Shown here: positions 29,491 to 34,013 of the stretch, one piece after another
How positions within the stretch are numbered: the first letter of the stretch is position 1
How the letters are laid out: every line of letters starts with the position of its first letter
Source of the DNA: Perkinsus chesapeaki ATCC PRA-425
Taxonomy: Eukaryota; Protista; Perkinsozoa
Length of the DNA: 52,374 bases
Direction of reading: 5' to 3'
Assembly (NCBI GenBank): GCA_013115145.1
Contig: JAAPAO010000213.1
Span: 1-52,374 of the forward strand
Notes under the pieces: generated by a model
The model's database searches: none
What the model saw: the letters and a program-made list of their open reading frames with translations, nothing else
Told to the model about the DNA's origin: nothing
Made by a program: the position numbers and the translations under genes

Positions 29491-31994
29491 ATGGCATTCT
29501 CTATCCACCAGCTCCTCATTTCACTAACCACGGTCATCGTCGGCGTGATAACTTCCGACGATATCTTCGATAATGTTAACATACTCGCTGGAACCTCTAA
29601 TTCTTACCCGCTCTCTACTGGAGGATCGATGCCTGTTATGTCCAGGCCATTTGGTTTCAATCACTGGTCTGTGCAGACTGAGCCTGATTCAAGCCAAAGC
29701 CGTTACTTCAACCCCGGCTCGAATAGCTTCTACGGTGTTCGATGTACACATCAACCTTCTGTCTGGATAGGCGACTATGGCTACTTCGTGGTAACAGCAT
29801 TGATATCCAGCCAGGGCTTCGATCGTTCGTTTGAAATGATGGACTTCTCCCCCCTCTATACTATCTATAAGCCTTACTACTTCAAGTCGTCCACTCTGGT
29901 CCCCTCCTTCCAGGCTTCGGCTATGGGAGGCGTTACCATAGAGATGACGCCAACTAATCACGCGGCCTACTTTCGCTTCTCTTTTCCCCCAAAGATGAAC
30001 TCACGTGTATTAGTGAGGCTTATGGATGGGCAGGCCGACACACCTGTTACGACTGATGAGGGTACTTTCTCGACGAGGACGCATGTTAACAGTGGTGGTG
30101 TACCGAACAACTTCACTATGTTTATTCATGGTGTAGCGAGCTCGAGCGTAAAGGTTGTGAATCTTGGTGGGTCTATAGCTTTAGATTACGACAACAGAAA
30201 GAGTCCAAAAAGGGAGCTAATCGAGCTCCGTGTTGCGACGTCTTTCATCTCCGAGGCCCAGGCGATGCTAAATCTGGCCAAGGAGCTTCCGGCTGATCGA
30301 TCATTCGATTCGGTTGTGAAGGAGGGGGAAGATGTTTGGCTCAAACGGCTTGGTTATGTAAAGATCGATCACAGCGTGCAATCAGGTAACTTTTTAAGAA
30401 CTTTTTATACCAACTACTATCGAACAATGCTATTCCCTCGACTTCTGACAGAGTATGATGAGACGGGAAGAGCCGTCCACTATAGCCCCTACACCGGGGG
30501 GACGCATCCAGGAGAGTTGACCACAGATAGTGGTTTCTGGGACTCCTACAGGACTGTATACTTGTGGCTAAGTTTAAGTGCTCCAGACATTCTGGATCGT
30601 TTATTAGAGGGGTGGGTTAATGCGTATAAGGAAGCTGGATGGCTGCCGACTTGGGCATCACCTGGCCAGCGAGGGTCCATGGTGGGGACAATGGGAGATG
30701 TGGTAATACCAGAACCCATTTATCAAATGGATCACGTAGAACAGCTTCATTTCTACAGGTCCTAGCGTGGGCTATTGTAGCCAATAAATCGCCGCACTTG
30801 GCCGATGATATGTATGCAGCAATCAGGAAAGATGCTTTTACAGACGGCGATGGTCGATATGGGAGAGACGCCTTGACGGAATATTCTAGAAAAGGGTGAG
30901 CCCGAAGGAGTATAAGAATTAATCTCAATATTTATCGCAACTCCTCATTTAGATACATACCAGTGGGATCTACATCCGAGGTGGTATCGAGGACTCTCAA
31001 CTATGCCTTGGCCGATGATGCGATTGCTCATGCTGCCGAGAAGCTTGGACATTCTTCAGATGCCCACGAGCTGAGCCAGCGGGCACATAAAGCCATTGAG
31101 CAAACGTTCAATGTGGAAACCAAGCTCTTCGAGGCCCGCGACAACGACGGTTTCGTTAAGGGAGTATCTCCGGCTTCTTGGTCGGATGAATATTTCACAG
31201 AAGCGTCAGGATGGCAGTATCGATTCTACGCTCCCTTCGACGTTGATTTCCTCGTCGCCAAGTACGGTGGAAAAGCAGATTTCTGCTCGCATGTGAAGAA
31301 TCATTTTACGGCTCAGGAAGCTCCCATCTTCATTACTGATCGCCGTGGCGTCTTCCACGAAGAAACTGAGCTATCTCTGCTAAGTGAAGGGTTTGGACAG
31401 TACGGTCAGAACAACCAACCTTCACATCACGTGCTGGGTGTTGCATTAGCTGCTGGATGCTTCGAACATGCTGATAAATACATGCGTAAAGTCCTGAGAG
31501 AGCTTTATACTCCTAATGGATGGCCAGGCGATGAAGATAATGGTGAAATGTCTGCTTGGTTCATGTTGAATGCTCTCGGCTTGTATATGATAGACTTTGG
31601 TAAGGACGAGGTATTGCTATTCTCACCAATGGTTAAAGGAGGTTATGAGATATCTCTCCCCGGAGTAGACAAGCCCTTATCTGTCCATAATAATGGATCT
31701 TATGATCACGCTTACGTTTGTCAAGTACGATGGTTCCCGGAGGACGCTCCCGATGGTCAGAATAAATCGCCAGATAGTAGCTTACGCCACAAGCATGCAA
31801 ATGCGGCGCACCTCCCATCCGCTGTGGCCCTGCGAGCGTTCGGCAAGGGCGTACATGGTGATTTGATGGGCAAACCGGGGCCTCCAGTTGATCAGGCCAC
31901 TACCGGCTCTCTTCCCAGCAGACGAGTGCCGCGTTCTGCTCTTACCAATGGCGGTAGGTTGGACTTCATTACTTCTTCTAAGCCTTGTCAATAG
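29491..31994 (+). CDS. Glycoside hydrolase family 92 alpha-mannosidase (secreted)
   Basis: Signal peptide, then RPFGFNHW, THQPSVWIGDYG, DSGFWDSYRT, GWLPTWASPG, FTEASGWQY, FHEE, NNQPSHH and PGDEDNGEMSAW. Introns 30703-30758 and 30896-30952 restore the frame. Confidence 0.92.
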
Positions 31995-32541: not shown

Positions 32542-34013
32542 ATGTTTAACCAGTCGGCAGCAAGAGCTGTTCGAGAGATCCCAGAGGATCGTTTTCCTCA
32601 TCACCGTCGACCCGACGAATTGCTCCTCCGAGGCTACACCGCTCCGGTCTCGTCATCGTGGGGCACATCAGAAAGCAAGCCTAATCTCGCTGAATATATA
32701 ACGGGACCTAGTCAGCGTCGTGTTCCACGGAGCTCTCTGCTTCGGGTTGATACGGTTACTCAAGAAGTTTCTGATCACTTTCCTCAGGTTGGTGAATCTT
32801 CAACACTCAGCTTATTGATACATTAGTCCCTCCGACGTCTCAGGTCTATTGGGTGAATCCATCGATACCGGTAATGACTTGGAATGTTATGACACGAGCA
32901 CGTTTTGATCATATCAAAGAGCATCGAAACAACGCCTTTAGCAAGAATGAGAATCTAGAAGAGTATGCGCGGCGTAGGAGGAGACATTGACAACTTTCTT
33001 CATCAATTTGTATGGGTTCCAGGCATTCTCGGTCCAGCCCTCCATGTTGTGCGAGAGTTCTTTCTCCAATATCCTGCAACAGCGGTCTGCTGCCTACAAG
33101 AGTTCTCAACTGATCGGCGTCTACAGGAAGAATTTGCCAACAGATTACAGGAATCGCTTCCTGAAAGTATTTCACCGCAAGCTTATCACCTTGTTGGTCA
33201 CTGTAGTCACTTTCTCAGGGACGATTCGCTTCGAGTTCGCAGCATTGACTCACTCCCTGGGAAACGTCATTGTATGGGATGAACGTGTTTTCAAAGGAGC
33301 GAGAGTTACTGATCTCCCGTGTGAAAGAACAGCATGTGTAGATCTTTGGCCGCCCATGAGGAGACCGGATCTTGCGCCGACGCGAGTAAGCTAAATCTTT
33401 CATATTTGTTGGGTTAGTTCCATTGCAGATATGTAACTGCCATCTAGTGTGGAGAGCTTCACCAGGAGACCCTCGATACGGAGCCCACCTCGCAGAAATA
33501 GCGAAAGCCATAAGATATTTGTGGAGCCGAGCTCCTCCTGGCTTATGTGTTGTTGTGGGCGATTTCAACGTTGACTTGAAAGATATAGATATGGAATCCC
33601 ATGGTCTCATACATATTGAATCTGGTTCATCAGCATCGCCCGTTAAAGATATTCATCCATCCTCTGAAAGAATGGCGGTGCGAGTTCAACGAATTCCAGG
33701 ATCATCTGTCATTTCCATGATGGACGGGGCTCAGAAGTCTGCTACCAATGACGGCTGTATTTCTGGTCAAACTACTTCAAATCATCAGCCTCTACCGGAC
33801 CCTGGTACCGATCCTACGTACGGGTATCTCAAAGAGTCTGGATTCGAGTTGTACTTTGGTAAATCCCGTGAACAGTTCATCGTGCAGCACGTCGCATTCA
33901 GTATCCAGGATGCAGCAGCCCAGCTCTCTGATGACGAATTAGATATGCTAGGCCGGATGGCTTTTCGAGATCAACCTTCGAAGCTTGAGATGATCGTTGC
34001 GAACCGTCGATAG
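32542..34013 (+). CDS. Endonuclease/exonuclease/phosphatase (EEP, DNase I-like) family protein with permuted motif order; 5' end uncertain
   Basis: Four frame-preserving introns (32792-32826, 32974-33022, 33167-33218, 33386-33428) give SDHFP, VMTWNV, VCCLQEF, GNVIVW, ICNCHL and VVGDFN in that order. Confidence 0.78.

Follow-up and report, generated by a model that had tools for sequence, protein, structure and literature searches.

A putative circularly permuted EEP enzyme with an N-terminal catalytic histidine in Perkinsus chesapeaki

In this study we describe, from Perkinsus chesapeaki, a parasite of clams, a gene that probably encodes a circularly permuted EEP enzyme, with its catalytic histidine at the N-terminus of the domain. 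The gene lies at 32542–34013 on the forward strand of contig JAAPAO010000213.1, of which positions 1–52,374 were analysed (hereafter the window), and its product is held by NCBI as the hypothetical protein FOL47_003622 (P0001; 423 amino acids). Few hydrolase folds are as widespread and as thoroughly studied as the EEP fold, which is found in DNase I, APE1, CCR4, TDP2, the LINE-1 endonuclease, sphingomyelinases and bacterial CdtB, and the order of its motifs serves as a diagnostic. An ordinary EEP chain ends with the DYI strand, a penultimate strand, a loop, the S-D-H-x-P motif and a last strand. In fold and in residue set the Perkinsus protein belongs with the EEP enzymes, but its motifs do not stand in the order by which the family profiles are defined. 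With the EEP/DNase I-like superfamily (PF03372; DNase I, APE1/ExoIII, CCR4, TDP2, sphingomyelinases) it shares the motifs TxN, LQE, xHL, GDFN and D-x-x-I in their usual order, whereas SDHxP and the presumed last strand stand ahead of strand 1 and not at the C-terminus. A sequence-only reading of the window had proposed that the terminal strand with the catalytic histidine has moved to the N-terminus. Selection, the matching of tails, structural models and structural alignments agree in supporting this proposal, although they do not prove it. We infer the gene product to be a divergent EEP-fold phosphodiesterase or nuclease that depends on Mg2+, its activity being putative.

Results

An SDHFP motif ahead of strand 1

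The motif positions given in the sequence-only reading were all confirmed; like all other features described here, the motifs lie on the forward strand. SDHFP (32770–32784) comprises Ser77, Asp78, His79, Phe80 and Pro81, with the His79 codon at 32776–32778. Together with the following glutamine (SDHFPQ, residues 77–82) it stands 15 residues ahead of VMTWNV (32871–32888, residues 92–97), which is strand 1 and carries Asn96 at 32883–32885. The other motifs then follow in canonical order. CLQE (33091–33102, residues 149–152) supplies Glu152 and, in an alignment with ten paralogues, corresponds to their LQE/xE motif of strand 2; NCHL (33435–33446) spans residues 232–235; GDFN (33558–33569, residues 273–276) contains Asp274 and Asn276; and TNDGCI (33744–33761, residues 335–340) contains Asp337 and is by sequence order the last core strand of the domain. 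A late SNHQP (33777–33791, residues 346–350, with His348) comes after it.

Hence the catalytic set Asn96, Glu152, Asp274/Asn276 and Asp337 is present, and it is conserved in the Perkinsus olseni orthologue (P0029; 424 amino acids, 77% identity). The Asp78–His79 pair is present as well, but N-terminal. GDFNVD and TNDGCI are invariant across both species and P0019, a fragment of 166 amino acids (UniRef A0A2V0RJM7, filed as “viral metagenome”) that is the only more distant relative found. When the protein was shuffled 200,000 times, SDH.P appeared in a fixed 30-residue window in 0.04% of the shuffles, and in all six reading frames of the window (104,744 codons) it occurs once, at the 32770 site. 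A chance occurrence of SDHFP is unlikely.

The N-terminal block resembles canonical EEP tails of the same genome

Seven EEP paralogues of the P. chesapeaki genome could be read to their ends (L005, L006, L009–L012 and L014). In every one of them the chain closes with [STFP]DH and then a hydrophobic strand, 26–57 residues past the DYI-type aspartate. We scored every 14-residue window of both Perkinsus orthologues against these seven tails and found EVSDHFPQVYWVNP to be the top-scoring window in both, with scores of 8.3 and 7.7. The C-terminal site of P. chesapeaki (TTSNHQPLPDPGTD) scored -1.4. In an hhalign comparison of the N-terminal block with the tails, VSDHFPQV was aligned to xSDHxPix (P 0.0048), and the C-terminal tail gave P 0.5. 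A scan of the genome contigs with one paralogue for further canonical EEP sequences gave no match.

Purifying selection is strongest around SDHFP

The P. chesapeaki and P. olseni genes were compared codon by codon within each exon, and split codons were completed across the junctions. Silent sites are saturated (proportion of synonymous differences, pS, about 0.78), and therefore any conservation of amino acids reflects constraint. Constraint is tightest in residues 59–97 (RRVPRSSLLRVDTVTQEVSDHFPQVYWV.PSIPVMTWNV), with 23 synonymous changes against 1 non-synonymous change and a proportion of non-synonymous differences (pN) of 0.011. Within them, the last 24 codons of exon 1 (residues 59–82) carry 14 synonymous changes and no non-synonymous one, and the junction of exons 1 and 2 is conserved, which places SDH within coding sequence. 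The EEP core (residues 98–342) has a pN of 0.08–0.09. Residues 343–368, comprising SNHQP and a linker, reach 0.32 and are the second least constrained part after residues 1–58, which are poorly conserved (pN 0.45) and probably disordered. Selection is thus extremely purifying on residues 59–97 and relaxed on residues 343–368.

Predicted structure and structural matches

An AlphaFold model of the full-length protein was built from six alignment rows and, with a mean predicted local distance difference test (pLDDT) of 49, was too poor for use; Foldseek searches with it matched EEP enzymes at a probability of 1.0. A second model covered residues 59–372 and was given additional rows consisting of the N-terminal halves, from strand 1 to GDFN, of ten paralogues. 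Only these halves were used because MAFFT pushed the DYI strand of the paralogues past the end of the query or onto the linker. The N-terminal halves were aligned by MAFFT on all motifs, and the added rows bias neither end of the protein. This model reached a predicted template modelling score of 0.69 and a mean pLDDT of 63.5, with values of 75–93 in the core. The four-layer alpha/beta sandwich of the EEP fold was recovered by Foldseek with the first model and by VIA-align with the second. In the second model QVYWV (residues 82–86) is a strand that leads through a three-residue turn into strand 1 (residues 90–96), at block pLDDT values of 66 and 82. Strands 1 and 2 are separated by two helices, and DGCISGQT (residues 337–344) is a strand. 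Residues 346–372 are coil at a pLDDT of about 33.

Structural alignment of the model by VIA-align returned 297 chains at Z of at least 8. The best matches were TDP2 structures (PDB 5ino, 5j3p), with Z 14.9, a root-mean-square deviation of 3.5 A and 14% identity over 194 aligned residues, pairing model residues 30–288 with residues 112–327 of 362 in the TDP2 chain. PDE12, CNOT6L, nocturnin and ANGEL2 followed at Z 13.5–14.1 with the longest alignments (208–217 residues), and DNase I and CdtB at Z 13.3. All alignments with solved EEP enzymes stop just after the TNDGCI strand and before the SDH strand of the target. They end at residue 220 of 260 in DNase I (starting from residue 1), at 497 in CNOT6L and at 385 in nocturnin. 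These ends lie a few residues beyond the DYI-type aspartates (DNase I Asp212, CNOT6L Asp489, nocturnin Asp377). They lie well before the SDH histidines (DNase I His252, CNOT6L His529, nocturnin His414, TDP2 His351). The ranges therefore identify TNDGCI as the DYI strand and leave nothing afterwards that fills the canonical C-terminal hairpin. Among nine ESM Atlas matches, all of which carry PF03372, eight end at model residues 286–293 and one at 309.

We also split the chain in ESMFold2, offering residues 56–91 to residues 89–345. The ipSAE score was 0.35 against 0.00 for the best control, with a partner pLDDT of 36–37. In the calibration, just 5 of 78 solved complexes passed at a score of 0.60 or lower, as did each of the 4 mismatches that passed; the test is weakly in favour of the proposal and adds little.

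The late SNHQP site

The sequence-only reading had offered an alternative, in which SNHQP is a degenerate canonical end of the domain and the upstream SDH a remnant. Extended to P. olseni, such a reading would make SNHQP and its counterpart YDHPV the real site in ordinary order, with the upstream SDH a remnant or a product of chance. The succession of TNDGCI and S-[ND]-H-x-P does mimic the usual order, the histidine stands within one position in both species, and LAYDHPVTQADVIT of P. olseni scores 5.9 against the canonical tails. Set against this, the DNA alignment shows that the two histidine codons are not homologous, CAT of P. chesapeaki facing GAC of P. olseni and CAT of P. olseni facing CAG of P. 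chesapeaki, with an indel of 6 nucleotides nearby. P0019 retains GDFNVD and TNDGCICG without any histidine afterwards. The site therefore behaves unlike that of a catalytic histidine. His348 follows Asp337 by only 11 residues, against the 26–57 of the seven paralogues, and is succeeded by PLPDPGTDP with no hydrophobic strand, so that there is no room for a penultimate or a last strand. The pN of 0.32 at this site against 0.011 at the N-terminal block, its modelling as low-confidence coil outside all structural alignments, and the hhalign result for the C-terminal tail all speak against the alternative as well, and we consider it very improbable. SNHQP is possibly a relic of an old C-terminal histidine site, or a mere linker.

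Gene model

The four frame-consistent introns of the sequence-only reading held in number: four GT..AG introns join the frames, and the five exons, translated singly, give P0001 residue for residue. In a whole-database protein search exon 5 was 100% identical to P0001. Exon 1 (32542–32787) encodes residues 1–82; residues 59–82 begin at 32716 and end in SDHFPQ. Intron 1 (32788–32843; 56 nucleotides, GT..AG) lies in phase 0 between Gln82 and Val83, and its retention would bring an in-frame TAG at 32824–32826. Exon 2 (32844–32973) encodes residues 83–126, that is VYWV, the NPSIP turn, VMTWNV and the start of a helical insert. Intron 2 (32974–33022; 49 nucleotides) separates it from exon 3 (33023–33166, residues 126–174), which carries CLQE. 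Intron 3 (33167–33218; 52 nucleotides) is followed by exon 4 (33219–33385, residues 174–229) with the sequence SLGNV, and intron 4 (33386–33428; 43 nucleotides) by exon 5 (33429–34013). The first part of exon 5 (33429–33776, residues 230–345) holds NCHL, GDFN, a long loop and TNDGCI and gives a partial PF03372 match. It is followed by SNHQP with a poorly constrained proline-rich linker (33777–33845, residues 346–368) and by a C-terminal helical module of about 55 residues with the stop codon (33846–34013, residues 369–423), whose helices appear in both models.

According to DNA alignment, donor and acceptor of all four introns are kept in P. olseni while the interiors have diverged, and some of the differences in intron length are not multiples of three. 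For intron 1, the CAG|GT donor and the TCTCAG|GT acceptor are kept around a diverged interior that differs in length by 4 nucleotides. The sequence-only reading had placed this intron at 32792–32826; the P. olseni comparison favours 32788–32843. The earlier boundaries are less likely because they need an ATTAG acceptor and an additional “VPPTSQ” coding stretch, neither of which has a counterpart in P. olseni, and they are probably wrong. That reading had also held that SDH would be absent from the protein if its intron were not used, yet SDHFPQ is retained with either intron. Taken together, species comparison supports the predicted gene model.

The gene model could nevertheless mislead if exon 1 were not joined to the rest. 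Perkinsus uses spliced-leader trans-splicing, and a leader added near 32843 would allow translation to begin at Met93, with SDH lost from the protein; besides that of exon 1 the frame offers a single further start, the ATG at 32874 within VMTWNV, and RNA coverage of the stretch was zero in the runs examined. We give such an artefact very little credence. The 14 synonymous and no non-synonymous changes at the end of exon 1 are the signature of translation in that frame, donor and acceptor are conserved in phase, and the start ATG is kept in P. olseni whereas the DNA upstream of it is unalignable. A start at Met93 would furthermore strip strand 1 of its first residues.

All four introns are tiny in both species. 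Those of P. olseni measure 52, 50, 47 and 45 nucleotides (L003, 3244–3878), at identical positions and phases and with essentially unalignable interiors. Just upstream, at 29491–31994 on the forward strand, lies a gene of glycoside hydrolase family 92 (GH92) in two open frames (29491–30765 and 30963–31994) that are presumably parted by an intron. A GH92 gene stands upstream in both species, and the loci are therefore syntenic.

Relatives and family placement

The PF03372 match of the protein covers profile positions 20–163 of 225 only. The canonical order is not found: the sole conserved SDHxP with an attached strand is at residues 77–86, and nothing past Asp337 aligns with the penultimate or last strand. 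With TDP2 the protein shares the (S/T)WN motif of strand 1 and the histidine of xHL, but the alignments end at TDP2 residues 327–336 of 362, and the C-terminal histidine strand of TDP2 has no counterpart after Asp337. The CCR4-type enzymes (CNOT6L, 3ngo; nocturnin, 6bt1; PDE12, 4zkf; ANGEL2, 6rw0) have a long helical insert between strand 1 and CLQE, as seen here, but they end in SDHxxL and a last strand (seen in L006), which is absent here, and their sequence similarity is not significant. The genome of P. chesapeaki contains paralogues of the CCR4 type (L006, L013). TDP2 and CCR4-type structures are tied within about one Z unit, and neither the PDB nor NCBIfam gave a sequence match that would settle the subfamily: sequence and profile searches of the PDB returned chance matches only (FecA, AMH, eIF2B), as did the NCBIfam search, and Pfam scans of short N- and C-terminal pieces gave no match.

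A word-index protein search with the whole of P0001 and with residues 59–345 (E up to 10) found the P. olseni orthologue as sole relative, and the same kind of search with exon 5 found no match. Exhaustive phmmer with exon 5 returned P0001, P0019 as an EEP fragment, and repeat proteins whose match is confined to the C-terminal module. Scans of metagenome and viral contigs with GDFNVD/TNDGCI patterns confirmed no relative, and an exon search of the P. chesapeaki genome found no paralogue of the gene. No P. marinus orthologue was among the protein-search matches, which did not cover the P. marinus genome itself.

The C-terminal module (33846–34010, residues 369–423; FGKSREQFIVQHVAFSIQDAAAQLSDDELDMLGRMAFRDQ...) consists of one unit of a repeat of about 55 residues. 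The same repeat occurs 6–11 times in tandem in the otherwise unannotated proteins P0002–P0018, which were found by phmmer in marine eukaryote transcriptomes (MMETSP, Tara, JGI, Logan). One of them, P0002, matches the Pfam family SF3b1 (PF08920) over the protein as a whole with an E of 6e-13, but no single stretch passes alone. P0019 has the same architecture of EEP domain and repeat module as the Perkinsus protein, with GDFNVD, TNDGCICG and then one repeat, and therefore looks like a eukaryote transcript rather than a viral gene. Another protein, P0020 (1402 amino acids), is built from almost identical units of about 73 residues (…AAIPEIPPTGRCQAKTRPGAKIGPNPHSFAFCLFF…) and matches residues 88–130 of exon 5 with an E of 3e-10. 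The match looks compositional, or a chance similarity to the loop region, and P0020 does not look like an EEP relative.

Discussion

We propose that an element which ordinarily closes the EEP domain now opens it, which would constitute a natural circular permutation. The conserved part of the protein would begin with RRVPRSSLLRVDTVTQEV-SDHFP-QVYWV and pass through a tight NPS(IP) turn into strand 1, VMTWNV. The usual order would then follow, with the glutamate of CLQE, the histidine of NCHL, the aspartate and asparagine of GDFN and the aspartate of TNDGCI, after which the chain would leave the domain through the loose proline-rich linker and enter the small helical module. We suggest that the QVYWV strand fills the slot of the last strand beside strand 1, with Asp78 and His79 at its head next to Asn96, Glu152, Asp274, Asn276 and Asp337, so completing the catalytic set, and that His79 would be the catalytic base. 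The late SNHQP would have no catalytic role.

In APE1 and DNase I the DYI strand leaves the active site, the penultimate strand returns and SDH stands at the top, from which the last strand descends beside strand 1 and antiparallel to it. The block LLRVDTV - TQEV - SDH - FPQVYWV - NPS - IPVMTWN would fit the hairpin geometry known from EEP enzymes. His79 precedes Asn96 by 17 residues, with a tight turn between them, and the two would therefore come to the same height on neighbouring strands. His348, which lies eight strand residues and a turn past Asp337, would by comparison end up at the opposite end of the sandwich. The permutation may have cut the chain in the bottom turn that follows the DYI strand; conservation ends there, at residue 344, and resumes at the N-terminus with residue 59.

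Several observations weigh against this proposal. Residues 59–78 stay below a pLDDT of 50 in both models, with His79 at the edge of that stretch, and the proposed penultimate strand LLRVDTV is modelled only as a two-residue bridge. The alignment behind the models is shallow, effectively two species, and its paralogue rows comprise the N-terminal half only. The place given here to His79 with respect to Asn96, Glu152 and Asp337 is putative, and the antiparallel neighbourhood of strand 1, running up to its asparagine, and the last strand is carried over from APE1 and DNase I. Alignments with the CCR4-type enzymes start at model residues 13–16, so that structure precedes strand 1 in relatives too, and the N-terminal strand could in principle sit in another slot. 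Close to its C-terminal site P. olseni has retained YDHPV..DVIT, which scores 5.9 against the canonical tails. PF03372 scores below its gathering score of 24.5, with 20.3 bits for the whole protein and 21.5 bits for residues 59–345, and the family consists of two Perkinsus species and one fragment. As to transcription, none of the listed sequencing runs contains the stretch, and two small runs from the same species had zero coverage.

Some of these points would also fit an enzyme without the catalytic histidine. The N-terminal block might be conserved for another role, such as docking, regulation or an extra strand like the one that precedes strand 1 in CCR4-type enzymes, with SDHFP a coincidence; this would imply a pseudo-enzyme or an altered chemistry. 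The low model confidence around SDH and the structure ahead of strand 1 in CNOT6L, nocturnin, PDE12 and ANGEL2 agree with such a view, and strong conservation alone is silent on what the segment does. We nevertheless regard it as rather unlikely. The match extends over the whole of S-D-H-x-P and the alternating hydrophobic residues, is the best window in the protein and is rare by chance, and the three-residue turn forces QVYWV next to strand 1. Within the core, moreover, nothing else qualifies as the missing last strand, and both species retain all other catalytic residues, which one would hardly expect of a dead enzyme. A permuted enzyme with His79 in the active site is therefore the reading we prefer.

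How the permutation could have arisen is a matter of conjecture. Circular permutation through duplication and trimming is a textbook mechanism in other folds, and it might be possible, if rather doubtful, that the gene is a snapshot of such a process. In that case residues 59–88 would have arisen as a duplicate of the ancestor's C-terminal beta-hairpin, comprising penultimate strand, SDH and last strand, and would have become catalytic, while the original copy would be decaying separately in each species, leaving SNHQPLP in P. chesapeaki, YDHPVTQADVIT in P. olseni and nothing in P0019. The N-terminal block does resemble the hairpin once at the C-terminus, and a weakly similar S-[ND]-H-x-P stands near that former position, but no intermediate or unpermuted close relative was found. 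A full-text literature search yielded no paper on circular permutation in EEP/DNase I-like enzymes and none on Perkinsus with EEP enzymes.

In conclusion, we characterized a Perkinsus gene whose product combines the EEP core with a highly conserved SDHFP block ahead of strand 1. If the permutation is true, it would mean that the EEP active site tolerates re-threading of the chain, and it would explain why profile searches stop half-way and why such proteins are labelled “hypothetical”. The protein would also offer a natural template for engineering split or permuted EEP nucleases. If SNHQP is a relic, the gene would document the duplication route to permutation, and if the duplication snapshot holds, it would show an enzyme active site part-way through circular permutation, a stage rarely met in nature.

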